From positions 62,001 to 126,000 of the IMG/VR virus record IMGVR_UViG_3300033182_000674: a stretch of 64,000 nucleotides of DNA; one strand, written 5' to 3'. Shown in pieces: positions 8,639 to 62,078 of the stretch; position 1 is the stretch's first letter, and each line of letters opens with the position of its first letter. The notes below the pieces were generated by a model. It worked only from the letters and a program-made list of their open reading frames with translations. It was not told the DNA's origin and did no database searches. The position numbers and the translations under genes are program-made.

Positions 8639-9547
8639 TTATTTTCCGCTTTTTACAATACTCTTATCACCGGTTGCTTGATCAGCTGGTCTCTTAGGTG
8701 CAGCTTTAACATCAGCAGCAAATGATTTAAAGTTTTGTACGTTTACTTTCTCATGATCATATTTATCATCAGTTTCAACTTTATGCATATCAACAAAATC
8801 TTTTTCGCCTTTACGCTTCTTTAATTGATCTACCCAATTATCACGTGTAATAGGATCAGACTTGTGATTTGCGGTTGGCTTATCAGCTTTAGGCTCTTTA
8901 GGCTCAAATGCTTCAGTTGTTTCTACTTTCATATCTTCATCCTGATCTTCATGCTGTACTTGAGTATTATTACCAGACTTTAATCTTTTCTTACCAATAG
9001 ATCCAATACCTAGTTTACGCATTGCTTTTTCTTTCGCTTCTTTTTCAGAACGTGCAGATACAGTTGCAAAACCACGTCCGGGAATAGTGATTTTATAACT
9101 CTTATCTTCTGATACTTCTTCTACAGATTCTAGTTCTACACTTTCTTTTTGAGGCTCTACAACATCTTTTTCTTTTTCATCATCGCATTCACATGGTTCT
9201 TTACCGCATGAATCACAAACCTCATCAGATTCTTTAGCTTCATTCTTTACAGCTTTACTGACTGCTTTACGACGATTGTGGAGATATTCATCAGACTCAT
9301 CTTCATCACCATCATTATCGATGTCTTTATCTTTACGATCATCAAACTTTTTCTTTAATGCTTTAGGCTGAACCTTGTCCATACCTTCACCATCGTCTGA
9401 TACGTCGTTAGTATTATCTTCTTTCTTACAACTCTTTCTTTCTTCAAGAGTTTCTTCTTCAAGAGTTTCTTCCAAGACTTCTTCTTTCTTATTAAGTCCT
9501 AAGACTTCTAAATATGCTGAAGTCATGTTTTTGTAATCGATTGCCAT
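8639..9547 (-). CDS. Highly charged late protein, probable internal head/core protein
   Basis: D.D.DNDGD.D.SD.YL..RRKA motif, many LEE/VEE sites, late promoter at 9596-9603. Confidence 0.55.
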   Translation of the reverse strand: MAIDYKNMTSAYLEVLGLNKKEEVLEETLEEETLEERKSCKKEDNTNDVSDDGEGMDKVQPKALKKKFDDRKDKDIDNDGDEDESDEYLHNRRKAVSKAVKNEAKESDEVCDSCGKEPCECDDEKEKDVVEPQKESVELESVEEVSEDKSYKITIPGRGFATVSARSEKEAKEKAMRKLGIGSIGKKRLKSGNNTQVQHEDQDEDMKVETTEAFEPKEPKADKPTANHKSDPITRDNWVDQLKKRKGEKDFVDMHKVETDDKYDHEKVNVQNFKSFAADVKAAPKRPADQATGDKSIVKSGK

Positions 9548-9607: not shown

Positions 9608-12205
9608 TTATCCCTTCAACGATGCTGAAGGTGGTGTAAAGTTTGCGGTATATCTTGCTAGACCTTTAGTGACGCGAGCATCTTCAATATAACCCGTAAA
9701 ATGCCAAGTATATTGATCTAAGCTAGTACCTCCACTCATTCTGCCAAGATATAAATTATCATTTGCTGGTATAGATACATCTAAATTAACACCATTAAAG
9801 GTTGAAGCATCCGATCCAACGTTTGTGCCATCATACCAGAAATTTATAGTACCAGATTCTCTAGTCACTGCAACATGGTGCCAGCCGCCTGTTCCCATAT
9901 TAATTGCATTTGAGTGTGATGATTTAAAAGTAGAATCAAAGTTATTAGTTGGTTTGTGACTAAGTTTCAATTTATTACCTTGTTGCTGGTTATACCTAAA
10001 ATCCCATGAAACTCTACTACTACTATTAGCACTAAAGAAATTACCCAAGCTAATAATAGGACTATAAGTTTCATTTGCGGCAGTTACACCGTCCACTGTT
10101 TGATATACCCAAGCTTCAATAGTAAAATCACCAGTATTTAAATCATATTCTGGAGTATGAGGGAGTGTGATATAATCACCAGTTCCATCTAAGTACATTG
10201 ATGAAGAACCATTATTTGTTACTGCAGTCGATGATTGAGTGTTACCATTTAGTACTAATCCGCCAGACTGTGCTTTATCAATTATAGCAGCATCATCATG
10301 GCCATTGACCAATAATACTGTATTAGTGATTTCTTCTAGTGGTTCTGTTGGTGGAGTAAACGCAGCAGTATAAAGTGCTGTGCCTTTTAAAATTCTTAAA
10401 TCAGTAGTAAAACCATTTACATAACCATTTGATCCATCCCATGCACCCCAGTGAATATGGAAGTCACCGCCTTTACACCAATCAATACTTCCAGCATTAC
10501 TGCCTGTTGCTTCTTGTTTACCATTAACCCAAAGCGTAAAATTATTACCACTTCTCGTTAATGCAATATGCATCCATTCATTTGCTCTAAACGATGATGA
10601 TGAAGTTAACCAAGGATCTCCTATGCCATTCCAGAAAAATGCTACTTTATTTGGTGCAGTAGTATTATTAAAACGTAATGCAACACCACCAGAAGGATTA
10701 GACCAACTTTCGCCTGAAACAATACTTGGATAGTTGCCTGGAGTACTAACATTATAATGCCAGAATTCAACAGTAAAATCACCAGTACCCATATCTAAAT
10801 CATTTGTATCTGCTACTGTTATATATTGTCCAGATGCAGTATATAGAGATGCGCCGTGTGTTGCCGAATCGTATTCTTTGTAATCGTATGGAGCAAAAGG
10901 TTTAGCACTTACGTTACCATTTACAGTAATTGTATGATCATTTGATGAGCTGTCTTTAGGATATGGCAGCTGACAAGTTAATAAAGATGTATTAGTAACT
11001 GCGGTTAAGCGTTCTGTTGGTGAGGTGAATGCTGATGTATAAAGAGCAGTACCGTTAACGATACGAGCGTCTGAAATATAACCATTAAATAGTTGTATTG
11101 AACCATCTTGATTCATTCCAACATATAAACTTGGCGCCGTAGAATTCATATTTGAGCTATCTGTTTGAGTGGTTCCTATTTGTGTGCCATTAAGGAAAAA
11201 CTTTAAATTAGTTCCTTCTCTAGACACAGCAATATGGTACCATTGTCCGGTAGTAAATGTTTCAGATGCGGTATACTGCGTTCCAAATGCACTGTTATTA
11301 CCAGTAGAAAATAAAAATGTATCAGATTTTATTTGAATAATAAAATTAAAAGCATTAGCTCCACCCCATGATCCAAACACCGTTTGATATGTAGAAGAGT
11401 TTATGCTAGTGAAATAAATCCAACTTTCAATAGTAAAATCACCAGTACCAAATTGAAGACTAGTATCATTAGGAATACTTAAATAATCTCCACTACCATC
11501 AAAATAATAACTATAACCACCCGAACGATATGGACTGAATGTCTGTGCAGTTGCACCAGATACAGTAAGTGTTTTTGGTGTGGTATTTTTATCTGTTAAA
11601 CCAGTATTAACATCGCCATTACCACCAATAGAAGTAATTAATGCTGATGTATATTTTGAATCTTCAACGAAGAAAGCCAATTCAAATGAATTAACATCTG
11701 TCGACAAGTTTACACCATCTGAAGCAGTAAATGTGATTGAGAATGTTCCCGCATCAGCTGAATTTGTAGATGGTGTGATAGTAAATACATTATCTGCTTG
11801 AGATACAGTAGCAGTATTTCCAAGAGAACCAGAAGTAACTGAATAGGACCATGTAATAGGCAACTCTTCTGGATCTGTAGCAACTAATGTAATAACGGTT
11901 GGTGTACCATCATCAGCAAGTGTATATGCTCCAGCTCCTCCTTGTGTGATCTGAGGGGCAGTATTAATTAATGCAATATTATACCAACCGTCGCCATTCC
12001 AGATGTAAAGACGGTTATTACCTGTGACATAAACCTGATCACCAGGATTGTTTCCTGTTAATGGTAAATCATTAACTGTACCATAATTAACAGTAGACGA
12101 TACATCACCTGCAGTTACTTTACTCCAAGCATTATCTGTGGAATTATAAATGTATCCACTATACTTATCACCATTTGCTGGATTTGTTGGAAATGTTATT
12201 GCCAT
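9608..12205 (-). CDS. Tail fibre/adhesin-like virion protein with cadherin-like domain and three LamG/ConA-like domains
   Basis: Three repeats of FDG.GDY...GDFTIE.W...W.H.A..R......F.NG...GYI.D.RI..G.A.YT..FT.P; N-terminal MAITFPTNP. Confidence 0.8.
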   Translation of the reverse strand: MAITFPTNPANGDKYSGYIYNSTDNAWSKVTAGDVSSTVNYGTVNDLPLTGNNPGDQVYVTGNNRLYIWNGDGWYNIALINTAPQITQGGAGAYTLADDGTPTVITLVATDPEELPITWSYSVTSGSLGNTATVSQADNVFTITPSTNSADAGTFSITFTASDGVNLSTDVNSFELAFFVEDSKYTSALITSIGGNGDVNTGLTDKNTTPKTLTVSGATAQTFSPYRSGGYSYYFDGSGDYLSIPNDTSLQFGTGDFTIESWIYFTSINSSTYQTVFGSWGGANAFNFIIQIKSDTFLFSTGNNSAFGTQYTASETFTTGQWYHIAVSREGTNLKFFLNGTQIGTTQTDSSNMNSTAPSLYVGMNQDGSIQLFNGYISDARIVNGTALYTSAFTSPTERLTAVTNTSLLTCQLPYPKDSSSNDHTITVNGNVSAKPFAPYDYKEYDSATHGASLYTASGQYITVADTNDLDMGTGDFTVEFWHYNVSTPGNYPSIVSGESWSNPSGGVALRFNNTTAPNKVAFFWNGIGDPWLTSSSSFRANEWMHIALTRSGNNFTLWVNGKQEATGSNAGSIDWCKGGDFHIHWGAWDGSNGYVNGFTTDLRILKGTALYTAAFTPPTEPLEEITNTVLLVNGHDDAAIIDKAQSGGLVLNGNTQSSTAVTNNGSSSMYLDGTGDYITLPHTPEYDLNTGDFTIEAWVYQTVDGVTAANETYSPIISLGNFFSANSSSRVSWDFRYNQQQGNKLKLSHKPTNNFDSTFKSSHSNAINMGTGGWHHVAVTRESGTINFWYDGTNVGSDASTFNGVNLDVSIPANDNLYLGRMSGGTSLDQYTWHFTGYIEDARVTKGLARYTANFTPPSASLKG

Positions 12206-12230: not shown

Positions 12231-13439
12231 TTAATATGCACTAAAACCAGATGGAGTACTATATACTCGTGAATCTTTATTAACGCCAATATGTAATTTA
12301 GCATCCATATAGGTAAAGCTAGATGTTCCACTAATATAGCCATAATAAAGATCTCCAGATCCACCAATTACTATACTACTGGAAGTAGTAGGATCTTCAT
12401 ACCAAACATTATTTCTAGCAAACCAAACTTCTCTTGTTGAAGTATCTACACAAATACCTATAATATCATTGACACCTATTGTACCTAATGAAACACCTGA
12501 AGTGCCACCATAATAAATAATACCATCTTCATATATTGAAGCTTGATTTGCCGATCCATAAGACATGTTTAGTGCTGCATCTGCAATACCGCCCCAAAAA
12601 TTGTAGCTACTATAAGTTACAACACTACTTTCAATATACCAACGTCCCGATTTTAAAGGATTATCAGCGGTACCATCATAAGGTGATCTAGAAAAGTTAT
12701 TATCAATTGAGCCAGTAAATGCACTGGTTTGAGTACCACCAGCAAATGTCATATCGCTTGAAAATGATAAATTAAACGTCGATGTTTTACCAATAACGTT
12801 TAATCCATCTGATGCTTTAAACCTCATTACAAAATCACCAGCGTCTGAATCATTTGTTGAAGGTGTGATTGTAAAAGTACCATCATTATTATTAACAATA
12901 GTGGCTTGAGTTTGATTTGATGGTGATGTATCATAGTCATATGTTATACCAAACCCATCAGGATCTGTTGCTTCTACAGTAGCAGTTGTTGCTGTACCAT
13001 CAGTTGCTAACAGATAAGTCGAATTAGGTTCAACAACCCAATCTGGATTTTGATTAGATCCACTATAAACTTGATCCCATTCTGCTCCATCCCATACATA
13101 TAATGCCTTCGTATCTTGAGCAATTACAAACTGGCCGAGAGTATTACCGGATGTTGGAAAGTTTGTTTTACTTGCATATTGTACTGCTGCTCCATCTGCT
13201 CCATCTGCACCGTCTGCACCAGTAGGACCACTAATAGCAACCCACACTGAACCATATCTTACATATAATGCACCAGTTGATGATTTCCACCACATTGTTC
13301 CTTGTACAGGATTATCTGGTGCAGTATCAGATACTTTAATTGCTGAAGATAATTTTTCCCAAACACCTACAGTACCATTATAAACATAGGTTTGGTAAAT
13401 ATCACCATCACTTGGATTTGTTGGAAAATCTAATGCCAT
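12231..13439 (-). CDS. Virion adhesin paralog with C-terminal SPRY-like domain
   Basis: MALDFPTNPSDG start, short collagen-like G-x-x run, ATDPDG Ig-like module, SGRWY.E and D.IG..VD......WF.RN..W motifs. Confidence 0.7.
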   Translation of the reverse strand: MALDFPTNPSDGDIYQTYVYNGTVGVWEKLSSAIKVSDTAPDNPVQGTMWWKSSTGALYVRYGSVWVAISGPTGADGADGADGAAVQYASKTNFPTSGNTLGQFVIAQDTKALYVWDGAEWDQVYSGSNQNPDWVVEPNSTYLLATDGTATTATVEATDPDGFGITYDYDTSPSNQTQATIVNNNDGTFTITPSTNDSDAGDFVMRFKASDGLNVIGKTSTFNLSFSSDMTFAGGTQTSAFTGSIDNNFSRSPYDGTADNPLKSGRWYIESSVVTYSSYNFWGGIADAALNMSYGSANQASIYEDGIIYYGGTSGVSLGTIGVNDIIGICVDTSTREVWFARNNVWYEDPTTSSSIVIGGSGDLYYGYISGTSSFTYMDAKLHIGVNKDSRVYSTPSGFSAY

Positions 13440-13449
13440 TTCTTATTCC

Positions 13450-14979
13450 TTAAAAAGTAATTGTTCCATCATCAGTAAATGTATACCAATAATAGCCACC
13501 ACTTTGAGTTTCTGTAACAGTACCTGTTGTTGCAGATGCTTGTCCATCTGCTCTTAATATGCAAACACCAGATCCACCAGAGCCTGCAAGGGCAGAGTGT
13601 GGTCCACCACCACCGCCGCCACCGGTATTAGCAGTACCATCAGAAGCAGCAGTTGTACCACGAATACCGCCTTGTCCACCGCCGCCTTGTCCACCGGCTG
13701 ATTGCACAGTCGATGAATCATCGCTATTACCGCCGCCACCGCCGGCATAATAGTTACCATCTATCCACTGTAAGCCAGCGCCACCAACACCGCCATAAGT
13801 GCCACCGCCATTACCTCCAGATGCGCCTGCGCCGCCACCGCCGCCAGCACCAGCACCTGCTCCTCCAGCACCAGAGTACGCAGCTCCACCGCCATTGCCG
13901 TATTTCTGCCAGCCTGTACCTGATACATTACCAACGCCAGTACCACCACTGCCACCAGTAGTGCCACCAACACCGCCGCCGCCGCCACAGCCGCCACTAT
14001 TACCTGAAGTACCAGTACCGGTAGTATAATGACCACCGCCACCGCCGCCTTCTGCAGTTAATGATGTAGAATCGGGTAATGTTAATGTTGATGCTGATCC
14101 ATTGAATCCATTAGTATGGCCATTTGCGGGATTGCTTCCAGCTCCGCCGGCGCCAACCACAACTGAGAAAGTTCCACTTAATAAACTTAATGCTTCAGTA
14201 CTAACAAGATAAGCGCCAGCACCACCAGCACCACCGCCGTCTGTACCACCGCCACCACCGCCGCCGACTAATAAATAATCAACAGTAGTATTCCAAGTTA
14301 AATTAAACGTATTTACATCATTTGTTGTATACACACCATCAGAAGCAGTAAATGTTAATTGGAATGTTCCTGCATCATTTTGATCAGTTGATGGTGTGAT
14401 CGTAAATACATTATCTGCTTGAGATACTGTTGCTGTACTTCCAAGAGAACCAGAGGTAACAGCATAAGACCAAGTAATAGGTAAACCTTCTGGATCAGTT
14501 GCACTTAATGTAATAACGGTTGGTGTACCATCTGTTGCTAATTTATATGTTCCTGCTCCGCCTTGTATAATATTAGGTCCAGTATTAGTTGTAGCAATAT
14601 GTTCCCATGCACTACCACTCCAAATGTATAGCTTAGACACGTCTTCTGCATATGCTAAATCACCTGCAGTATTACCAGATGTTGGAAATGAAGAAGTATT
14701 AGCATATGATACAGTTGCGTCTGCGCCAGCAGCACCGTCTAAACCATCAGCTCCATTACCTGCAGTAATCCATTGCCCATCATATCTAATGTACATTCCA
14801 CCAGTTGTAGAATTCCACCAGAATACACCTTCTGCTGCACTACTAGGTGCTGAAGCAGAAATAATAACAGGAGATTGAGATGCATCCCACACACCAGTAG
14901 TTGCATTATAAATGTATGCCGTTTGACCTACTAATGTAGTTTGACCGTCACTTGGATTTGTTGGAAATGTTATTGCCAT
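13450..14979 (-). CDS. Virion adhesin paralog with glycine-rich C-terminal domain
   Basis: Shared N-terminal modules followed by VDYLLVGGGGGGG...YYAGGGGG...ANTGGGGGG...GGSGV. Confidence 0.75.
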   Translation of the reverse strand: MAITFPTNPSDGQTTLVGQTAYIYNATTGVWDASQSPVIISASAPSSAAEGVFWWNSTTGGMYIRYDGQWITAGNGADGLDGAAGADATVSYANTSSFPTSGNTAGDLAYAEDVSKLYIWSGSAWEHIATTNTGPNIIQGGAGTYKLATDGTPTVITLSATDPEGLPITWSYAVTSGSLGSTATVSQADNVFTITPSTDQNDAGTFQLTFTASDGVYTTNDVNTFNLTWNTTVDYLLVGGGGGGGTDGGGAGGAGAYLVSTEALSLLSGTFSVVVGAGGAGSNPANGHTNGFNGSASTLTLPDSTSLTAEGGGGGGHYTTGTGTSGNSGGCGGGGGVGGTTGGSGGTGVGNVSGTGWQKYGNGGGAAYSGAGGAGAGAGGGGGAGASGGNGGGTYGGVGGAGLQWIDGNYYAGGGGGNSDDSSTVQSAGGQGGGGQGGIRGTTAASDGTANTGGGGGGGPHSALAGSGGSGVCILRADGQASATTGTVTETQSGGYYWYTFTDDGTITF

Positions 14980-17027: not shown

Positions 17028-18032
17028 TTAATACCAAATCTGTTTTATGCCAGATATAATTGTTGTTCCACCGCCTTCACCGCCTTCGCTGTTTATTGTA
17101 CGACCAACTATATACTTACTTCCACCACCATAGATTCTTTTTATCTCAGCAATATTATATGGCACATCACTTCTTAATGAAAAAATTCTTTTTCTACTTT
17201 CTGGTAAAGATGTTGATGTGGGTGAAGTGATTGAAGTAATTTTACGTCTTTTAGATAAATTAATTTCTGGTGCTACGCCATTACCATATGATAAAGTTTC
17301 TCTGTATACATCAGCAGGACCAATTGTTGTTTGACCAACAAAATTTGAACCATCACCAGCATAATAAAAATATTGAGAAAGATCTGTAGTTTTCGAAAGA
17401 CTAGGACCTGCCCAGTTAAATGTCATATTAGATCCACCAATCTGTTCTTCATGAACTATACGTATAGGATAATATACATCAGCAGTTAAAGAAATACTAC
17501 CACTTCTTTCTTGATTACCGTGGCCTGAACCCATATCATTATTTACAACTGCGTTAGAAGTAGTTCTTCCAGTTGCGTCTGATGCAATGTCACCAATCCA
17601 AACACCAGAGCCATCATCGGAAGATGTATAAAAAGTGTATGTTCCAGTTGTAGGAGGTCTAAAATACCCAATCCACATATAAGCATAGTTATTGCCAAGA
17701 TCGCCATAACTAATAGATGTAAATAATGTCGCACTTGTGAATGGTAATGTAATACCAACATCACCTGATGCTATTGTATTTCTTGCTGTAGAAGTTAAAA
17801 TTTGTTCACCATATAATCCACCTTGATTATATGTTACATTGCTTGCAGCAACAGCATCACCAATCGCATCACCTTGAGTTGAAAAATGATATGTTCCAGC
17901 TAATATATCAAGATCATTTTGTAACGTCCAAGAGACAGTGGATGAAGAACTTTTAATATGAGATGGCTCATAAAACGCATCTACCTTGTTCTCATCTCCA
18001 TGTCCGTTTGAACGTATACTAAACGTTGCCAT
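17028..18032 (-). CDS. PA14/GLEYA carbohydrate-binding domain virion protein
   Basis: W.GYF.PPTTGTYTF...SDDGS.VWI and L.A..YYPIRI motifs. Confidence 0.8.
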   Translation of the reverse strand: MATFSIRSNGHGDENKVDAFYEPSHIKSSSSTVSWTLQNDLDILAGTYHFSTQGDAIGDAVAASNVTYNQGGLYGEQILTSTARNTIASGDVGITLPFTSATLFTSISYGDLGNNYAYMWIGYFRPPTTGTYTFYTSSDDGSGVWIGDIASDATGRTTSNAVVNNDMGSGHGNQERSGSISLTADVYYPIRIVHEEQIGGSNMTFNWAGPSLSKTTDLSQYFYYAGDGSNFVGQTTIGPADVYRETLSYGNGVAPEINLSKRRKITSITSPTSTSLPESRKRIFSLRSDVPYNIAEIKRIYGGGSKYIVGRTINSEGGEGGGTTIISGIKQIWY

Positions 18033-23137: not shown

Positions 23138-24871
23138 TTATTTACGTAAGTCTTTAAACGATTTATTAAGTACATTCTCGTTTTTGAGCTTGCCTCTCTT
23201 TTGTAACTCTCTTTTAGCAGCCATTGCGTGAGCACCACCTTTCTTTGCAAGAGTGTAAAGAGAGCTATCAGACATTTTAGATACCATCATATTCTGAGCT
23301 ACTGAATACATACCTTCATTAGTTTCTTTTTCTTCTTTAGGTACACAGTTAGGAACTTTCTTACCATTCTTATCTTTCATACCAACCATTTCATAATCTT
23401 TCCAACATGGATCATTATCTTCTTTTTTGGTTGTTGCCATACCTTTAGTAGCACCAGGCTTCTTCATATCTGATTTAGCTGCTGCTCTTGCTGCTTTTGC
23501 ATCTTGACGATTAATTTTTTGTGCAGCCTTTTTAATCATATCATAGCGTGCTGGATTACCTGCTTCATCTAATTCAACAGACTCTGGTAATTTACCACGT
23601 TTAACACTATTCTTTTGTTGCCATGAAATATTCTGCTTACCAAGACCTTTCTTAGCTGCTTTCTTTTGAGCTTTATCAGTATCAACGATGTTCTGAGCAT
23701 AACCACGTTTAGCCATCTTAGGATCCTGCGCCATGTGTGCATCGCTGCGCTTCTTAGATTGCTTTTCGCGCCACTTGTCGAACTTGTCACCTTTCATTTT
23801 AAGAGCACGATCATGGTGAGTATACTTACCACCAAATACACCTTGCTTATCTGCATACTTAGCAGCAGAACCAACTGCTTCTTCAATCTCTACTTCTTCA
23901 CTAATAGTACCATTAGCACGGAATTGACGCAGACTAGCAATTACAGAACTATGTGCTTGAGCAGAAGCAGTAACCCATAGGTCTTTACCTTTACGCTCAA
24001 CTTTAGCATTCTTATCACGCTCTTTAATTGAGTTCTCAATATACTTATCTGTTTTGTCTACATCATATTTAAATCTATGTTGACCAACAGGAACTTTACC
24101 ACCACGGAGTTTAACTTCTACTGCCTCATCGATTTGAAATTCAGTTTCTTCTTTCAAACCTGCTTTATGCATAAGTGATCTATGCATAGCTGGATCATGC
24201 TTTTTAATGATAGACATAACTTTATCACGTGGATCTGTATCCATACCACGAATATGTTTAGCAGCTTGATGTACAGCACCTGGATTACCAGTTTCTGAAT
24301 GATGTGCTAATTTACCAGCAACATGATGGAAATCTTTCTTATCGATACCACCACTCTTAGTACCATAATCATGAAGAGCTGCAGCAGCTTTAGACTTGGT
24401 TTTCAAACCTTCTTCTACTTCTTCTTTTTTTGATGCACCAGCTAAACCTTTCTTAGCAAGATGTTTGGCCATATTTTTGATAGGGTTGCCAAATCTGTCT
24501 TTACGCTGTTGACCAGGTTTTACTGTTTTATAAGGTTTTGAAAAAGGTGGTTTAACATCTTCGCTGAAATAATCTTGATAATCAACTGATTCATGCATAT
24601 GTGCTTTATTCTTAGTTCTATAATTTTGAACAGCTCTATTAGCAGCACGATCACCACTTTTTGAATAAGCACTTAAATAAGCATCAGCTTCACCTTTAGC
24701 ATGTTCAGGCTTCTTATAAGACCCGCCGCCATGATACATTGTATGGCCTTTAGTTTTATGTTTAATCTGAGCTCTATACCCACCTTTATGTCCTTTATCA
24801 GCATGAGTAGTATAGTCGGATGCGTAAATTGCTTCCTCTAAGCCTGTTTTAAAATTCTTAAAATTTTTCAT
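23138..24871 (-). CDS. Probable internal head polyprotein
   Basis: Capsid-targeting-like N-terminus MKNFKNFKTGLEE; basic modules separated by acidic (V/I/L)xE motifs; late promoter at 24906-24913. Confidence 0.6.
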   Translation of the reverse strand: MKNFKNFKTGLEEAIYASDYTTHADKGHKGGYRAQIKHKTKGHTMYHGGGSYKKPEHAKGEADAYLSAYSKSGDRAANRAVQNYRTKNKAHMHESVDYQDYFSEDVKPPFSKPYKTVKPGQQRKDRFGNPIKNMAKHLAKKGLAGASKKEEVEEGLKTKSKAAAALHDYGTKSGGIDKKDFHHVAGKLAHHSETGNPGAVHQAAKHIRGMDTDPRDKVMSIIKKHDPAMHRSLMHKAGLKEETEFQIDEAVEVKLRGGKVPVGQHRFKYDVDKTDKYIENSIKERDKNAKVERKGKDLWVTASAQAHSSVIASLRQFRANGTISEEVEIEEAVGSAAKYADKQGVFGGKYTHHDRALKMKGDKFDKWREKQSKKRSDAHMAQDPKMAKRGYAQNIVDTDKAQKKAAKKGLGKQNISWQQKNSVKRGKLPESVELDEAGNPARYDMIKKAAQKINRQDAKAARAAAKSDMKKPGATKGMATTKKEDNDPCWKDYEMVGMKDKNGKKVPNCVPKEEKETNEGMYSVAQNMMVSKMSDSSLYTLAKKGGAHAMAAKRELQKRGKLKNENVLNKSFKDLRK

Positions 24872-24923
24872 TTTGTTAAACCCTATCAGTTGTTTGTTAT
24901 TATACTATTTATAGTTATTTTAA

Positions 24924-27861: not shown

Positions 27862-28140
27862 TTAATATTCTCTTATTTGTAATACTAAATTAGTTTTGCC
27901 TTTAATTATACGATGATATTCACATGATTCAATATGAAATTCATCACCTACTTTTAGATCAAATGGAATTTCATTATCATATTGGAATTTCCATCCTTCT
28001 CCTTCTAGAACTTCTACGGTTCTATTATTTTCATCCCTATGCCACACAAGTTCTTTTGACGAAACGTCTTTATCAAATTCTCTAATAATATAACCATCTT
28101 CAACAACCTGTGTGTAAGGTCTATTAAGATTTTCTACCAA
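27862..28140 (-). CDS. Small cupin-like protein
   Basis: LVWHRD...R...V.EG.GW.FQ.D...YHR.IKG. Confidence 0.65.
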   Translation of the reverse strand: MVENLNRPYTQVVEDGYIIREFDKDVSSKELVWHRDENNRTVEVLEGEGWKFQYDNEIPFDLKVGDEFHIESCEYHRIIKGKTNLVLQIREY

Positions 28141-28925
28141 AAGAAATTGCCTCCACCACTAAGTCCTAATTGTTTTGCATAATATGGTAATCTACATGAC
28201 CAATAACCTGATGAAGTCTTGTCATTTTTTTGATCACAATTATGTCTTGCAACGAAAGACTTACGCGCTGCAGGGTCATCGATCTTAGCCTTAAGGCCAG
28301 TTGTATCTCCAAAAGAAACCTTTTTAACATTACCTGTTTTTGGATCTTTCACATAAACATAAAACTTTTTAGCGCCACCACGCTTTGGTTTATTAAGTTC
28401 TACATCTTTTTCTTCGTTAATTTTACCAACGATTTGCGCATCTACATCAACTGCAGATCCATCTTTAATTCTGAACTTAGCAGTACGTTTATTTGGTAAT
28501 TCTAGAGTAATAAATTGTTTACCAACGTTCTTAACTTTAAGTTTGTATTTACCAGACTTGCCGATTGGTCCAGAAGCAGTTAGATTAACTTCTACAGTAT
28601 CGCCTTTTTGAATATTCATCTTTTTCATAAAAGGACCCATACGTACTTCGTTAACGGATTCTCTTTCCATCATTGGACAATCTAAAGGTACATGCTTTCC
28701 TTCATACATATCAAATAAACCAATATCAGTTTGTTCTAATAAAAACTTATCAATTCCTTCTGGAATATATGTACCTTCTTCCATTTGTTTGCGTGCTTCA
28801 GCAAATAAAGCATAATAGCCTTCTGAACCAACACGAAAAACATTTTCATTTAATGGAATACCTTTTTCGATATGATACTCTAAATTTAGAGATGCATCAT
28901 TATTATATGTCTTAAATGTTTTCAT
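28134..28925 (-). CDS. Probable internal head protein (conserved C-terminal KF.VYV...KKV.FG...RKSF.ARH.C domain)
   Basis: MKTFK start, multi-module layout with VNE/INE boundaries. Confidence 0.6.
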   Translation of the reverse strand: MKTFKTYNNDASLNLEYHIEKGIPLNENVFRVGSEGYYALFAEARKQMEEGTYIPEGIDKFLLEQTDIGLFDMYEGKHVPLDCPMMERESVNEVRMGPFMKKMNIQKGDTVEVNLTASGPIGKSGKYKLKVKNVGKQFITLELPNKRTAKFRIKDGSAVDVDAQIVGKINEEKDVELNKPKRGGAKKFYVYVKDPKTGNVKKVSFGDTTGLKAKIDDPAARKSFVARHNCDQKNDKTSSGYWSCRLPYYAKQLGLSGGGNFFW

Positions 28926-29356
28926 CCGAATTCATGTCCTGCAACGCGTCTCATTTCTTTTTTAAATTGTTCATATGAAGGCTTTTCTTTATATAACTTA
29001 ATAGAAATTTCTGGTCTATCTTTACCTTTAATTCTCCAGTTATAACCTTTTTCTTTATGTTCAGGTTTAGTTGTTTTTACAACTCGTCTTTTATAACCAG
29101 CTTCCCAGCTTTCTGAACCTTCATCTAAACTTTCGGTAACCATATTAGCTAATTCTCTAGCATCAACACCATTATATTGTTTTGCTATTTGAGAAGCATA
29201 ATATTCAATACCATGTTTCTTATCTTTCTTTTTACGTGCCCATACTTTTTTTAGTGTATCAGCAGCATGCTTATAAGCTTTCTTATGAGTTAGCTTACTT
29301 ACACCTCTGGTAAACCAATTACCATCTTCTTCTATATAGGACTTAAACGTTTTCAA
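28922..29356 (-). CDS. Probable internal head protein
   Basis: MKTFKSYIEE resembles the T4 capsid-targeting sequence; two basic modules split by ESLDE. Confidence 0.6.
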   Translation of the reverse strand: MKTFKSYIEEDGNWFTRGVSKLTHKKAYKHAADTLKKVWARKKKDKKHGIEYYASQIAKQYNGVDARELANMVTESLDEGSESWEAGYKRRVVKTTKPEHKEKGYNWRIKGKDRPEISIKLYKEKPSYEQFKKEMRRVAGHEFG

Positions 29357-30729
29357 TTCTTTTTACCACGCTCTTTAGCCATTAATGCTGCCAATTTACC
29401 AAGAGTATGTTGATCTTTATGAGTCATATTATCTCTTTTTCTTTGGTCTAATTGTCTATTCATAGACTTACCATACTCAGCAGATGATTCATTCTTTTCT
29501 TTGCGTTCTGCATCTAAGAAAGCAGCTACTGCCATTTTCTTACGCTCATCTTTATCTTTACCTTTAAATTGAGGAGCATCGGATGATTGAAAATCTTTAA
29601 CCCAAGCACCCATTCCATCAGATACTTTAAGAACTTCATTTACACTTTCTTGATGATCAGAATTTGCAACCTTTTTACGTTGCTTTGGAATCATCTTAAT
29701 TCTCATTTTACCCATAGCATCTCGATATGTTACAGGTTTCTTATCAGCAGAAGTTACAAAGTTTGCTGTATTAACATCGCCAGATGCTTCATCAATATCA
29801 TCTTTTCCTGTAGCTTTTGCTCTAAATGCTTTCTTTGCATCAGCAGGAGTAACTCTATCAATACTCTTAATCATTTCTTCTGGCTTCTTTAATTTTTGTC
29901 TAAGAGAAGCTTTAATTTCGCCAGCTGATCCACCATCAATATACATCTTTGGCAAACCTTCAATGTCTACTTTATATAATGCTTCATTAACATCTTCTTT
30001 CTTCAACGCTTCTTTTTCACGTTGGTGTTTATCTGCTAATGATTCTTTTTCTCTGGCATGCTTAAGTTTTAGTTGAGCCTTTTGTGCTTCTGATGCAGCT
30101 TCTTCAACTTGCTCTTCTTTTAACTTACCTTTCATTGCACCATACATTTTATCGCTTTTACCTGCTTCGCGATCCTTATCTTTTTTCTTTTCAGCATCTG
30201 TAGGTGGTGTATATCTTAAAGAGCTAGATTGTTTTTGTTTAATTAAACGACCTAATGTTCTTGGTCTGCTCCAAGCTTCATCAACGCTTTCAAATTTCAT
30301 ATCATCAAGATCTAAATCTTTTACATCTTCTTCATCTTCAATATCTGACTTATTAGCCATCATATAATCTCTAACAGTATCTAAATCTTCCATAGCTCTA
30401 GAGATTTTTCCCTGACACCATTCAGGAAGATTTTCATCATCTTCCATCATATCATGTAATTCTTCTGCAGCATCAGCAATAACAACTAAATGATCTTTAG
30501 CCATATCACCTTCATTATCATATTCATCATCGTCTTCATACATTGCATGATAGTTTCTATAGCCTTCATGTAGTTTACTATCTAAACCACCAGCAAGTGC
30601 ATCGAATAATGAGAAGGCTGAGATGTTTTCGATTTGCTCCATCTCTTCAGCCAATTTAATAAACTCTGGCTTATTTGCATTATGAGCAATAGCCGATCTA
30701 AAAGTATTAAGCCATTTATCTGCTGACAT
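29353..30729 (-). CDS. Probable internal head polyprotein
   Basis: Modules separated by ESVDEA, EQVEEA, EDVNEA, DIDEA, ESVNEV. Confidence 0.55.
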   Translation of the reverse strand: MSADKWLNTFRSAIAHNANKPEFIKLAEEMEQIENISAFSLFDALAGGLDSKLHEGYRNYHAMYEDDDEYDNEGDMAKDHLVVIADAAEELHDMMEDDENLPEWCQGKISRAMEDLDTVRDYMMANKSDIEDEEDVKDLDLDDMKFESVDEAWSRPRTLGRLIKQKQSSSLRYTPPTDAEKKKDKDREAGKSDKMYGAMKGKLKEEQVEEAASEAQKAQLKLKHAREKESLADKHQREKEALKKEDVNEALYKVDIEGLPKMYIDGGSAGEIKASLRQKLKKPEEMIKSIDRVTPADAKKAFRAKATGKDDIDEASGDVNTANFVTSADKKPVTYRDAMGKMRIKMIPKQRKKVANSDHQESVNEVLKVSDGMGAWVKDFQSSDAPQFKGKDKDERKKMAVAAFLDAERKEKNESSAEYGKSMNRQLDQRKRDNMTHKDQHTLGKLAALMAKERGKKN

Positions 30730-31732
30730 TTTTATCTCCCTTGGAATTTCTCAATCTAGCAGACTGAGCTCTTTTAATAGTATTAAATGTTTTAGGAACC
30801 TTTGCCGTTGGCTTTGGTTGTATTGACTTTTCGTTACTAGGTAATTGGCCTGGAATAATTTTCTTTAAATCATTTGTATATTCAGGCGTACCAACTTCAT
30901 ATACTTTTTCTTCTAGTGGCTCTACAGCATCTAGCCATTTACGAATAGTCTTACCATCTGATAATTCTAAAATCAGATAATTAGATCCTTTATGTTGCAC
31001 TGTTGCAACTTCTTCGGTTTCTTTAATAACAACTTGATCACCTTTATTGAAAATATCTCCGGTAACAAATTGTTCTCTAATCTGTGAAACAGGTTCCATT
31101 TGAACATGATTTCTAAATTCGGTTTGCTCTTTAAGACCCATACCTTTTCTCACTGCATTAAATAAATCTTTTGAATCTTTATTAGAAAAGTTCTTAGGAA
31201 GACCATGTGAGAATTGAACAAAGTCATTGTCTGCTGCAGCATTTCTTTGTTTGGTTGCAGACGCGCCAGATACATCATCAGAATCTGGATCTCTTTCACC
31301 TGCTGAAATAACCTTAATAGATTTAAAGTTATATAAACCATGACGAGCTTTAACACCATTATATTTGTTTAAAAGCATGTCGAATTCTTTTATACGATCA
31401 TCACCAACAACCATAACTAAATTTACATAGCCTTCTTCAAACATTGAAGTGGCCGCGCCCATAACATTCTTTACGTTCTTATTCATCATAATAAAACGAG
31501 CATGTTTTGGAAACATCTTACGCACAAATTTAACTTTCTCTGTATACGACAAGGGATTCTTTTTAGCGTCCTGTGACTGCGTAAGATAGACACGATATGG
31601 ATTACGTTGTGCTTTAGATGATAATTTATCTAAAAGCATACCATGTCCAATAGTAGGAGGATTCATTCTACCAAGAGTAAAATAAATTGTTTTTTCTTCT
31701 TCTACTAAATATTGTCTGAAGGAATTAATCAT
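30716..31732 (-). CDS. HxGH-type nucleotidyltransferase (cytidylyltransferase-like) with C-terminal SH3/KOW-like domain
   Basis: GRMNPPTIGH, KNPL, VVG.DR and SATK.R motifs; N-terminus MINSFRQYLVEE. Confidence 0.8.
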   Translation of the reverse strand: MINSFRQYLVEEEKTIYFTLGRMNPPTIGHGMLLDKLSSKAQRNPYRVYLTQSQDAKKNPLSYTEKVKFVRKMFPKHARFIMMNKNVKNVMGAATSMFEEGYVNLVMVVGDDRIKEFDMLLNKYNGVKARHGLYNFKSIKVISAGERDPDSDDVSGASATKQRNAAADNDFVQFSHGLPKNFSNKDSKDLFNAVRKGMGLKEQTEFRNHVQMEPVSQIREQFVTGDIFNKGDQVVIKETEEVATVQHKGSNYLILELSDGKTIRKWLDAVEPLEEKVYEVGTPEYTNDLKKIIPGQLPSNEKSIQPKPTAKVPKTFNTIKRAQSARLRNSKGDKNVSR

Positions 31733-32169
31733 TTCGAACCGCCACCCCTTTTTCTGGCTAACTCAGCTTTACGAATCTTAGGTAGTAGTTTCTTTGCAAT
31801 ACGATCTATTCTACCGCCCATTCTTTCGAGTTTCTTTTCAATTTCCTGCTTACGAGCGTATGTCAATTCGCTCTTAGGAATTCCTTTAGTAATTTTCTTA
31901 AGGACTAAATTTCTTGCTGCACGTCTAGAACGTTTCTTTAGCACAGGCAAAGATGCAACTCTTCGCTTAGCTCTTAAACGTCCCATGCGAATCTTTGATT
32001 TGTTTTTACGGAGAGAACGAGCACGCTTTAAACGTTGTTGTAAACTAAGCGCTTCGCCAACAGGACCGCCGCCAAGGCCTCTACGCTTTCTACGTTGTGC
32101 TCTATAATTCATGAAGTCGTCTTCACCTGCAAGAGTATCGACGACAGTTAAGTCTTTAAAATCTAACAT
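31729..32169 (-). CDS. Extremely Arg/Lys-rich protein, possible DNA-condensing internal protein
   Basis: Composition; VGEAL possible processing site. Confidence 0.6.
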   Translation of the reverse strand: MLDFKDLTVVDTLAGEDDFMNYRAQRRKRRGLGGGPVGEALSLQQRLKRARSLRKNKSKIRMGRLRAKRRVASLPVLKKRSRRAARNLVLKKITKGIPKSELTYARKQEIEKKLERMGGRIDRIAKKLLPKIRKAELARKRGGGSK

Positions 32170-33395
32170 TAGTTTCTTCCTGGTTTATCCCATCCCTTTA
32201 ATACATCTGGCGAAAAGTTGTTGTATGAAAATTCCAATCTGTCAACAATCTTTACCGCGTCACCACCAAGTCTATCGATAGCAACATAACCTTCATGGCC
32301 TGTTACCTTAAAACCGTCCTTAGTTTTCACAAACGTATCGATAGTTTTCATCTTATTAAGTATATTTATAAGCTTTAACTTGACTTCTACTATTAATTTT
32401 TGCAAGTCAAACATCTTTTTAAGATTAGCTTTATTGCTATCACTAAAGAATAAAAGTAACTCATCTAACTTTTTTTGTTTAGATGCTTTACCTTTATCTG
32501 ATTTCATTTTTTCTTTTTCTGCTAGAACTTTTTGAATAATCCATTTAATAAGACCATTTACATGTCTTGTTGTATTTGTAATTGATTGACCAGCTCTAAC
32601 ATGAGTATTATTATATTGTTCAATCATTCTAGGTAATTCAGGATGCGCTTGTAATTGTTTTAGAGTAGTACTAGAAATTTGATTAAAGAGTTTACCAATC
32701 ATAGTTAATTTTTTATTAACATCATCAGTATCTCTTTTCGTCATAGTAATATTAGTCATATCTCTAAGCATTGCATCTTGTGACCACACATTAGCAGATT
32801 TTTTAAACTTACTAACATCTACACCGTATGAAGCTTTCATTGATTCGAAAGTACTTCCCGTATAAGTAGTATGCCATACAATACCAATCTTTGCACGTTT
32901 AATTTCTCTAGCGCCAGGTGATTTTGCTGGTACTGCGTAAATGATCGTATTAGGATGGAAAGTTAAATAGCTTTCACCATCAATAGTTTCAGTACTTAAA
33001 TCTGATTTTGAGAATAGAAAATCACCTTGTACAACACCTTTAATTCCTAGCTCTGGTAAATATTGTAGTGCTGCTTTAAGTTTATCTGAGAGGTCACCAG
33101 AGGTGTCTGCATCCACTTCTTCGGGTGTTTTATAGACCTTAGGGTTCTTATTAAAGATACCTTTCTTAGCTACAAAGAATTTACCATCAGATGGATCAAT
33201 ACCAGCAAATACGGCAGGAGCGCCGTCCCACTTAACACTAACAGAACCGCCATGACCACCAAGCATATTTCTCAAATCTCTAAGAGCAAAGATTGCTTCA
33301 CGGACACCATTCACGCCACCATATAATACTCTATCCTCAATATGAGTCATATGAGTATTTTTCTGTTCGTTAAGTGTTTGACTAAATGTTTTCAT
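32169..33395 (-). CDS. Ligase-fold nucleotidyltransferase-like protein (DUF6267-like)
   Basis: KWDG (motif I), VQGDF (III), EGYV (IV), VKIVDR (V); N-terminus MKTFSQTLNE; late promoter at 33447. Confidence 0.65.
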   Translation of the reverse strand: MKTFSQTLNEQKNTHMTHIEDRVLYGGVNGVREAIFALRDLRNMLGGHGGSVSVKWDGAPAVFAGIDPSDGKFFVAKKGIFNKNPKVYKTPEEVDADTSGDLSDKLKAALQYLPELGIKGVVQGDFLFSKSDLSTETIDGESYLTFHPNTIIYAVPAKSPGAREIKRAKIGIVWHTTYTGSTFESMKASYGVDVSKFKKSANVWSQDAMLRDMTNITMTKRDTDDVNKKLTMIGKLFNQISSTTLKQLQAHPELPRMIEQYNNTHVRAGQSITNTTRHVNGLIKWIIQKVLAEKEKMKSDKGKASKQKKLDELLLFFSDSNKANLKKMFDLQKLIVEVKLKLINILNKMKTIDTFVKTKDGFKVTGHEGYVAIDRLGGDAVKIVDRLEFSYNNFSPDVLKGWDKPGRN

Positions 33396-35666: not shown

Positions 35667-35733
35667 TATAAGGATATTTTATTTTTTAATGGATATGTGA
35701 TTTATGATTAAAATCTTTAATAATGAGAGAAAG

Positions 35734-36030
35734 TAGCAGGGTTTTGGGTGATAAGGAAACCCTGCTAGAACCTCAGATGGATCATGCTGCTAGAGCATAA
35801 CCACCATAAACGTCATCGTTTGCGTTTACTTTAAATGACAGTTAGGCTGTCTAGCCATTCTCAGTAATGCTTTCAAAACCCTGTCGAAACTGATCATCCC
35901 CGCCATAAGCACACCCTGCGTAGTCTTCAAACGTACTCGTCGAACCTTACTGCGCCTGACGGGTGTGCTTATGGTGGAGATGGTGGGAATCGCACCCACG
36001 TCCAGAGCTCCTATTGACATTACGTCAACG
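35734..36030 (-). ncRNA. ssrA: Circularly permuted two-piece tmRNA
   Basis: Acceptor piece with T-arm GTGGG-TGCGATT-CCCAC and CATCTCC-ACCA ending at 35972; 70 nt intervening hairpin; coding piece starting GGGGATG at 35901 (G3.U70 pair); tag frame 35823-35782 = ANDDVYGGYALAA*; terminal hairpin 35734-35767. Confidence 0.93.
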
Positions 36031-36159
36031 AATTAATTGCATCATTTCTGCTGTGACAAAAATAACTTTGCCTAAAAGAAATGTTGCTGCAACCCACAAA
36101 ATCACATAGCACCAACAGCAACTACATGATCCTATGGATTTAAACCATTTATCAAGCAT
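36025..36159 (-). CDS. Small Cys-rich membrane peptide (44 aa)
   Basis: MLDKWFKSIGSCSCCWCYVILWVAATFLLGKVIFVTAEMMQLIR; start overlaps the end of the upstream gene. Confidence 0.45.
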   Translation of the reverse strand: MLDKWFKSIGSCSCCWCYVILWVAATFLLGKVIFVTAEMMQLIR

Positions 36160-61457: not shown

Positions 61458-62078
61458 TTAGTCTTCCATCATAAACTCTGAAAGATCTGAATCAACAGAT
61501 TTCTTTCTTTTCTTACGAGTATTTAGATTATTGTCTTTTGCAAACTGTTTAATCTCATTATCGTAAGTTTTAACTTTATCAATTCTTTCTCTTAGATTAT
61601 CAACAAAGTGATTAGCATAAGTTTGTGCTACTTCATTATCTTCACCTTCAACTAAGAATTGATCATAAGAAGCCTGAGCCATATATCTTTCTTTGATTTC
61701 TTGTTGCTTCTTTTCTTTTGTAATACGACGCAAGAATGCATACCAGATTATCTGGGTAAAATAAGCAAACGCATTAGGTTTACCAGTTCTTGTTGTAGCA
61801 TTAACGTTATAGTTTTCAATCGCTTTTAAACAATTTTCTACTGCATCCATTACCATTTCTTCACGATACGTATATCTGATAAAGTTTGCTTTATGAGATA
61901 AATTCTCTGCAATCTTTAGAAATGACTCTGCAATGTAATTAGGAATAATAGGTGCTTTATTACCTTTATCTTTCTCTTTTTTTGCTTCATTAACATAGTC
62001 AACTACTGCTTGAGAAAATTCCTTATTATTAACGTAATGTACAGGTTGAGTTTTTGTCTTTGCCATCAAAGCCTCCAC
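61458..62078 (-). CDS. 55: Late-transcription sigma factor gp55
   Basis: HYVNNK.F, NF..Y.Y.EEM..D..E, NAFAYFTQI...AF..RI.KEK; acidic-hydrophobic C-terminal clamp-binding tail; promoter at 62102-62130. Confidence 0.93.
   Translation of the reverse strand: MEALMAKTKTQPVHYVNNKEFSQAVVDYVNEAKKEKDKGNKAPIIPNYIAESFLKIAENLSHKANFIRYTYREEMVMDAVENCLKAIENYNVNATTRTGKPNAFAYFTQIIWYAFLRRITKEKKQQEIKERYMAQASYDQFLVEGEDNEVAQTYANHFVDNLRERIDKVKTYDNEIKQFAKDNNLNTRKKRKKSVDSDLSEFMMED

Follow-up and report, generated by a model that had tools for sequence, protein, structure and literature searches.

The window analysed here, 64,000 nucleotides at positions 62,001 to 126,000 of the IMG/VR virus record IMGVR_UViG_3300033182_000674, carries on its minus strand at 23138..24871 an uninterrupted open reading frame (ORF) of 577 codons plus a stop, whose product, P0001, is on the evidence of its sequence probably a precursor of several head-internal proteins. 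A prediction made earlier from the letters of this DNA had proposed a polyprotein of this kind, and that proposal is supported in part: the linkers between its basic units match the cutting rule of the T4 prohead protease gp21, the edges of the units fall on linkers, and their order is shuffled among phages, while the number of products, two of the proposed linkers and the supposed slot of the gene in a gap between tail genes do not hold as originally described.

The virus record is a single 219,676-bp genome, rated complete, and belongs to a T4-like phage of the Pelagibacter/Methylophilales-myophage clade, with a gp23 that is 63% identical to that of Methylophilales phage Melnitz and 61% identical to that of Pelagibacter phage HTVC008M. 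Genes for Gp23 (E 6e-151) and for a prohead protease of the gp21 type (Peptidase_S77, E 4.6e-45; genome positions 129772-130422) are both present, and an acidic gp22-like scaffold lies just past the right end of the window; phi-x-E motifs are abundant in both gp22 and gp21. T4 gp21 cuts after L/I-x-E (PMC9026906), and the maturation site of gp23 in this phage, FLAE↓T (an arrow marks a known or predicted cut), aligns with the T4 site FLTE↓A (E65↓A66), so the L-x-E rule of the protease is conserved here. No alternative genetic code is needed, and a megablast search with the locus found no close DNA relatives among isolated phages.

As originally described, P0001 is rich in lysine and histidine (K 16.6%, R 4.5%, H 4.3%), with 122 lysines and arginines against 75 acidic residues, an isoelectric point (pI) of 9.8, a net charge of +47 and a full-chain mass of 64.5 kDa. 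A copy at 96% identity, P0002, is present on an independent contig, and 2,015 representative clusters match P0001 at E<=0.001, although the protein contains no Pfam domain at E<=0.01. Searches of the full-text literature, with motif strings and for descriptions of cyanophage or pelagiphage polyproteins or internal proteins, found no prior account of the polyprotein form. Upstream of the ATG by 35 nt there is a T4-type late-promoter motif, TATAAATA (24906..24913, minus strand), read directly and as a motif only, which would fit late expression of the gene. The 44 copies of this motif in the genome are in total near chance expectation, but 39 of them lie on the gene strand and 31 stand no more than 120 nt upstream of an ORF start, those of head genes included.

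Leader, linkers and modules of P0001

The strongest point for the polyprotein reading is one that the original prediction overlooked. Residues 1-13 of P0001, MKNFKNFKTGLEE (24833..24871, minus strand), form a predicted propeptide that by its sequence is a T4-type capsid targeting sequence (CTS), with a predicted cut after E13; this N-terminus, MKNFKNFKTGLEE↓A, resembles the start MKTYQEFIAE↓A that we read for IPII and IPIII from the T4 record. An Asp at position 10 of the T4 CTS blocks cutting. Ten N-terminal residues are enough in T4 to bring a protein into the prohead core; of these, positions 4 and 7 are important for targeting and positions 8 and 10 for cutting (PMC9026906). The leader of P0001 has the features of a T4 CTS, that is, a length of roughly 10-19 residues, hydrophobic or aromatic residues near positions 4 and 7, and an L/I-x-E followed by a small residue. 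The same leader recurs in a 62-residue ORF of the head-core cluster directly upstream of gp21, which starts MKNFKQLKESLYE↓A, and these two are the only ORFs in the genome that begin MKNFK...L.E↓A. Of the 184 homologues that start with methionine, 123 have a phi-x-E whose last residue falls at 8-20 (the mode, a sharp one, is 9-10), compared with 67 of 264 ORFs in the phage's own proteome, and some leaders in the family, MKSFKGFIQE↓A and MQSFKKFIAE↓A among them, come very close to that of T4.

Five sites in P0001, after residues 13 (LEE↓A), 154 (VEE↓G), 249 (IDE↓A), 331 (IEE↓A) and 436 (LDE↓A), fit [LIV]-[DE]-E↓A/G, and 4 of the 12 occurrences of [LI][DE]EA in the predicted proteome of the phage (70,476 residues) are found in this one protein. 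In a set of 190 homologues assembled from two database searches there are 327 such strict sites, compared with 30.6 +/- 5.4 in shuffled sequences, and their density of 3.5 per 1000 residues contrasts with 0.29 in the other proteins of the phage. The logo of 318 sites reads K-K-K-E-E-V-E, then L (58%), V (22%) or I (19%), then D (64%) or E (35%), then E↓ followed by A (79%) or G (20%). Conservation is greatest at the E of P1 and the A or G of P1', and every strict site has L, V or I at P3.

All eight of the acidic strings originally listed as gp21-type sites are present in the protein, and five of them fit the rule, but this does not extend to the remaining three. In homologues module A (defined below) ends in the linker KESVELDE↓A, of which HESVD is a degenerate form without the L-x-E, and FSED receives no comparative support as a site from the homologue alignments. 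TNE↓G, which has T at P3 and recurs in homologues as ETTE↓A or ETNE↓A after the module with the CW motif, can be counted only as a possible site. With HESVD and FSED unsupported and TNE↓G a possible site, about 6-7 products are to be expected in place of the roughly ten peptides first envisaged: five or six basic proteins of 6.5-16 kDa and the propeptide of 13 residues.

On P0001 the HMMER hits of homologues tend to begin or end at about residues 1-20, 91-110, 141-165, 221-260, 321-330, 431-450, 471-490 and 511-530. The modules delimited in this way are A (14-100), a (101-154), B (155-249), C (250-331), D (332-436), e (437-478), W (479-519) and F (520-577). These homology-defined edges fall on the linkers. 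In the DNA, all on the minus strand, modules A and a together occupy 24410..24832 (15.8 kDa, pI 9.7) and end with VEE↓G after residue 154; module B occupies 24125..24409 (10.4 kDa, pI 9.2) and ends IDE↓A250; module C occupies 23879..24124 (9.3 kDa, pI 9.0) and ends IEE↓A332; and module D occupies 23564..23878 (11.8 kDa, pI 10.0) and ends LDE↓A437. Modules e and W, residues 437-519, lie at 23315..23563 (9.2 kDa), include the W core CW...VPNCV (residues ~486-512, 23336-23416) and end at the possible site TNE↓G520, which leaves module F at 23141..23314 (6.5 kDa, pI 10.3).

Module alignments across homologues show a constant spacing between cut site and conserved core, with KESVELDE recurring at the C-terminal end. 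A phi-x-E lies within 3 residues of the N-edge in 68 of 74 cases for module A (76 instances in all) and in 43 of 53 for module B (51 instances), and exactly at the N-edge in 13 of 13 for module C. Module D, with 56 instances, has a conserved E↓AVGTAAKYA at its N-edge, where phi-x-E is found in 34 of 47 cases (33 of them exact) and the remainder have T/x-x-E↓A or similar. Where a module comes first in its protein, the cut site of the leader occupies the same alignment column as the cut site of the internal linker elsewhere, and this shared column is the best sequence-level argument that leader and linkers would receive the same cut.

Structure predictions by AlphaFold 2 (AF2) were made for modules A and D folded separately; the full protein with 130 module fragments was misaligned by MAFFT, the rows of module A reaching ~15% identity instead of ~50%. 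Module A is modelled with a predicted local distance difference test (pLDDT) score of 87 and a predicted template modelling (pTM) score of 0.76, as three strands and two helices. The model of module D is helical and of moderate confidence (pLDDT 68), too uncertain for a fold search; on both sides its linker ends fall below a pLDDT of 50, so that the linkers are predicted to be exposed or disordered. For module A, neither a profile search against PDB sequences (E<=10) nor Foldseek against the PDB (E<=0.001) gave a match, and none of the Pfam families fits. An exhaustive structure search returned HVO_2922 (DUF1508, Z 5.2) and the AP2 domain of WRINKLED1 (Z 4.6) as its best hits, both below the tool's caution level; the topology fits the AP2 or DUF1508 (YegP) beta3-alpha arrangement, and one of 40 members matched DUF1508 at E 0.06. 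Look-alikes of modules A and D in an atlas, with scores of 0.81-0.85, are leads only, and Pfam scans of the two modules found nothing consistent; one such lead, an S-AdoMet-lyase for module D, was not borne out by these scans. DNA binding or charge neutralisation by the modules is plausible from their charge and from the predicted small beta3-alpha fold of module A, and by analogy with T4 Ip1-3 an anti-defence role is possible.

Module shuffling and relatives in other viruses

The homologues are not collinear with P0001. Per-module comparison recovers 43 module orders among the 190 proteins (BAC, CBA, ACB, FBACa, WCA, WD, DB, BD and tandem W, for example), and the order of P0001 is shared only by its near-identical copy P0002. 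The exchange of modules among phages that had been predicted is thus observed, and the collinearity of homologues that would have spoken against it is not. In P0004 it is module F that stands at the N-terminus; single-module genes, leader plus A or leader plus B, also exist and resemble T4 Ips; and in P0008, P0012 and Melnitz gp18 modules are fused to a cytidylyltransferase-like enzyme.

The stretch in which the gene lies, between DUF6267 and DUF7207/zeta-like kinase/RNR, is syntenic but variable, and module content differs between close relatives at the same locus. It had been described as inserted between two tail genes, and in this genome both flanking genes do match tail-fibre PHROGs, but the neighbours are different in two other phages, so the tail-fibre-like flanks are local and the cassette is not specific to a gap between tail genes.

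The compact CW...VPNCV module that was picked out originally is real and widespread, with 69 instances of W, often in tandem. It occurs also in cyanophages, in Melnitz gp18, in gp160 of S-CREM2 and in gp13 of the haloarchaeal virus HSTV-1 (L047:2308-3729), a capsid-interior protein in which W sits between a protease domain and an acidic scaffold-like tail; the HSTV-1 case implies that the module crosses very distant virus groups and protease types. An IMG/VR search with the whole protein found mostly W-only loci, and Peptidase_S77 was present in one of five W-locus records tested, which is uninformative given that these records are only 42-86% complete. Among cultured phages, the T4-like cyanophage Bellamy encodes gp171 (534 residues), which shares the e-W region with P0001, has linkers of the EVDE↓A type, and in pieces matches 353 cyanophage records.

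Relatives of this family are on record in the virion proteome of S-CREM2. Three proteins of the syntenic region, gp154, gp155 and gp160, were detected there (PMC10665884). S-CREM2 gp160 (K 20%) matches P0001 at E 2e-6 and carries a W-like module followed by ETEISE↓G, gp155 is likewise lysine-rich (K 17%), and gp154 is a cytidylyltransferase that starts MKNFSSFLTE↓A. Cytidylyltransferases have been reported in cyanophage virions by published proteomes.

A proposed route through the prohead and its alternatives

If P0001 is a precursor of head-internal proteins, we would expect the gene to be expressed late in infection and the chain of 64.5 kDa to enter the prohead's scaffolding core as a whole, carried there by the 13-residue leader. 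There the gp21-type serine protease, cutting after L/I/V-x-E, would remove the leader and would also cut the exposed acidic linkers after E154, E249, E331, E436 and perhaps E519, releasing five or six basic proteins of 6.5-16 kDa and pI 9-10.3. These would stay with the packaged DNA, like T4 IPI-III, and at infection would probably be ejected together with it. We infer each of these steps, from targeting and cutting to retention and ejection. Since one leader would serve for the whole chain, we propose that several cargoes would be loaded in equal numbers, and since a conserved leader and linker would amount to a common grammar, modules could be swapped, duplicated, fused to enzymes or split off into single genes among marine T4-like phages.

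Several observations weigh against this scheme. About a third of the N-termini in the family show no clear leader, although some of these ORFs may be truncated, and in P0001 itself no site is left at the junction between A and a. In length the conserved linker far exceeds the three-residue rule known for gp21, so it could serve as a spacer, for charge balance or as a recombination joint. Modules A-D retain 40-60% identity across many phages, unlike the fast-diverging Ips of T-even phages. The S-CREM2 data speak to virion association only, and their authors note possible co-purification (PMC10665884). A complex predicted for gp21 and the linker at residues 415-455 yielded no verdict and counts on neither side as to binding.

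Some of these points would be accommodated if the protein were packaged and not cut internally. In this scenario the leader would be removed, a 62-kDa chain would remain whole, and the linkers would be flexible, charge-balancing spacers in an array of beads on a string along the DNA. The conservation of the linker from P10 to P1', which far exceeds L/I-x-E, is what one would expect of such a spacer, as is the loss of the hydrophobic P3 residue at some junctions (A/a here, T-x-E after W). We nonetheless regard an uncut chain as unlikely, since the most conserved positions are precisely the E of P1 and the A or G of P1', P3 is L, V or I at all strict sites, leader and linker cut sites are interchangeable before the same module, and in T4 an exposed L/I-x-E in a core protein is cut by gp21, for which few further requirements are known.

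Multiple internal gp21-type sites are also a property of T4 core proteins, and the leader of P0001 is common to a small ORF in the core-gene cluster, so one could instead imagine an accessory scaffold or core protein with a role in assembly or head size, cut by gp21 like gp22, gp67 and gp68, whose fragments exit before DNA enters. This alternative is, in our estimate, less likely again: the products would be basic, folded domains (pI 9-10.3, with module A modelled at pLDDT 87), quite unlike the acidic gp22 of this phage, and basic fragments should stay with the DNA, while the content of the gene varies between close relatives, unlike that of essential scaffolds, and lysine-rich relatives are present in mature virions. 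A protein that never enters the virion, acting late inside the cell in DNA binding or nucleoid remodelling, with leader and linkers unrelated to the head protease, would suit the high positive charge and the weak AP2/DUF1508-like fold of module A. It would leave unexplained why a head-core ORF has the same T4-type leader, why the linkers fit the protease rule exactly, why HSTV-1 carries W within its fusion of protease and scaffold, and why relatives are detected in a virion proteome, and we consider it the most improbable of these alternatives.

A broader version of the precursor reading is more tentative, and we would sooner bet against it than for it. It holds that marine T4-like phages use the leader and the EEVELDE↓A linker as a grammar for building ever-changing polyproteins, which the protease would cut and which would be packaged and injected together, with the linker doubling as a recombination joint. 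The phages in question may be the pelagimyophage-like ones and the cyanomyoviruses, and the pool may comprise dozens of small basic domains along with enzymes such as cytidylyltransferase. The conserved linker may be the recombination joint that drives shuffling; within the gene, the DNA of the linkers, compared as a sign of such joints, is not identical.

If the scheme is right, the targeting-and-cutting logic of T4 would be widespread in abundant marine T4-like phages, in keeping with the number of matching clusters, and would extend to polyproteins in which many cargoes share a leader. The predicted mature N-termini can be used for re-searching proteomes of virions and viral fractions, and Bellamy and S-CREM2 are cultured carriers in which the predictions can be tested. 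The modules also provide a set of basic domains, small and uncharacterised, which probably act on DNA or as infection begins, and the arrangement offers a natural design for loading T4-type capsids with multiple proteins.

Gene neighbourhood and comparison with known systems

Other genes of the window, all on the minus strand, draw on the same modules or begin in a similar way. A second lysine-rich multi-module gene (29353..30729, 458 residues) has four [VI]-x-E↓A sites (SVDE↓A, QVEE↓A, DVNE↓A, DIDE↓A) and shares modules with 30 family proteins, and pieces of a third (8639-9547) are common to 36 family proteins and come from the same module pool. Next to the second is a cytidylyltransferase-like gene (30716..31732) with the leader-like N-terminus MINSFRQYLVEE. 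In this genome it is separate from the basic ORF of 146 residues that follows it (both within 30716-32169), whereas in P0008 and P0012 the enzyme, the counterpart of the basic ORF and modules W, C and A make up one ORF of 765-920 residues. Starts resembling the T4 leader are found in four neighbours, at 28922-29356, 30716-31732, 32169-33395 and 28134-28925; they read MKTFKSYIEE, MINSFRQYLVEE (the cytidylyltransferase-like gene), MKTFSQTLNE (DUF6267) and MKTFKTY... (with a DUF5824-like C-terminus). By their N-termini, these ORFs suggest a cluster of head-targeted proteins.

Elsewhere on the minus strand of the window, three consecutive fibre-like ORFs (9608-12205, 12231-13439 and 13450-14979) have nearly the same N-terminus, MA[IL][TD]FPTNP..GD, and may be alternative receptor-binding fibres with a common attachment end; the first of them contains Laminin_G_3 domains. 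Among the fibre-like genes there is also an ORF of 334 residues with GLEYA/PA14 carbohydrate-binding domains (17028-18032). At 35732-36085 the phage encodes a permuted, two-piece transfer-messenger RNA (tmRNA) of alphaproteobacterial type, for which ARAGORN gives the tag ANDDVYGGYALAA and Rfam scores 116.6 bits for tmRNA_permuted and 66.7 bits for alpha_tmRNA; it fits an alphaproteobacterial host such as SAR11. Outside the window, and unusual in size for a T4-like phage, are an ORF of 2,565 residues between the portal gene and the head-core genes (G000 130953-138650) and a separate one of 4,627 residues (G000 156138-170021), both again on the minus strand.

For phage proteins that are packaged together with the DNA and disarm the host once injected, the internal proteins (IPs) of T4 are the textbook example, and they have been treated as a T-even peculiarity with one gene per protein. 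In T-even phages they form a diverse injected set that shares only the leader, and Ip1-3 each block a different GmrSD nuclease. P0001 is like these proteins in its leader of about 10-19 residues ending in L/I-x-E↓A, which gp21 removes in T4 and is predicted to remove here, and in the small basic mature proteins that result (8-20 kDa in T4, 6.5-16 kDa as predicted here). Non-conserved cargo in a variable region of the genome and cargo families with only the leader in common are further likenesses; late expression, as in T4, is possible for P0001 from its promoter motif. The differences are that each T-even gene has one cargo with its own leader, whereas here one leader precedes 6-8 modules with internal sites and a long conserved linker; that T4 IPIII has no sequence similarity to P0001 beyond the leader; and that T-even IPs diverge fast, whereas the modules described here are well conserved but recombined.

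The T4 core proteins gp22, gp67 and gp68 resemble P0001 in having several internal L/I-x-E cuts by gp21 (PMC9026906), and here the 62-residue ORF of the core cluster shares its leader. They are, however, acidic scaffolds whose fragments mostly leave the head, whereas P0001 is strongly basic with folded modules, and a scaffold or core protein would be acidic and encoded by a conserved single-copy core gene, unlike a product of pI 9.8 and charge +47 whose content varies at its locus.

Polyvalent proteins, as set out by Iyer et al. 2017, reportedly hold many unrelated domains in a single chain, whose delivery alongside the DNA and processing are presumed, and are said to be very large, with enzymatic domains and their own peptidases. 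P0001, by comparison, has no Pfam domain at the threshold given above, and the scans of modules A and D found nothing consistent. For the giant phages phiKZ and SPN3US, published accounts describe many head-internal proteins that are trimmed by a prohead protease and ejected into the host (PMC5694885, PMC10052503, PMC7411985). These inner-body proteins belong to another lineage, and each is a large protein of its own instead of a series of small modules that are shuffled. The giant-phage cleavage motif, S/A/G-x-E, also differs from L/I/V-x-E. The closest known system is the IP/CTS system of T4, and relative to it the novelty would be a multi-module precursor, a conserved extended linker and a shared pool of modules that are freely recombined.

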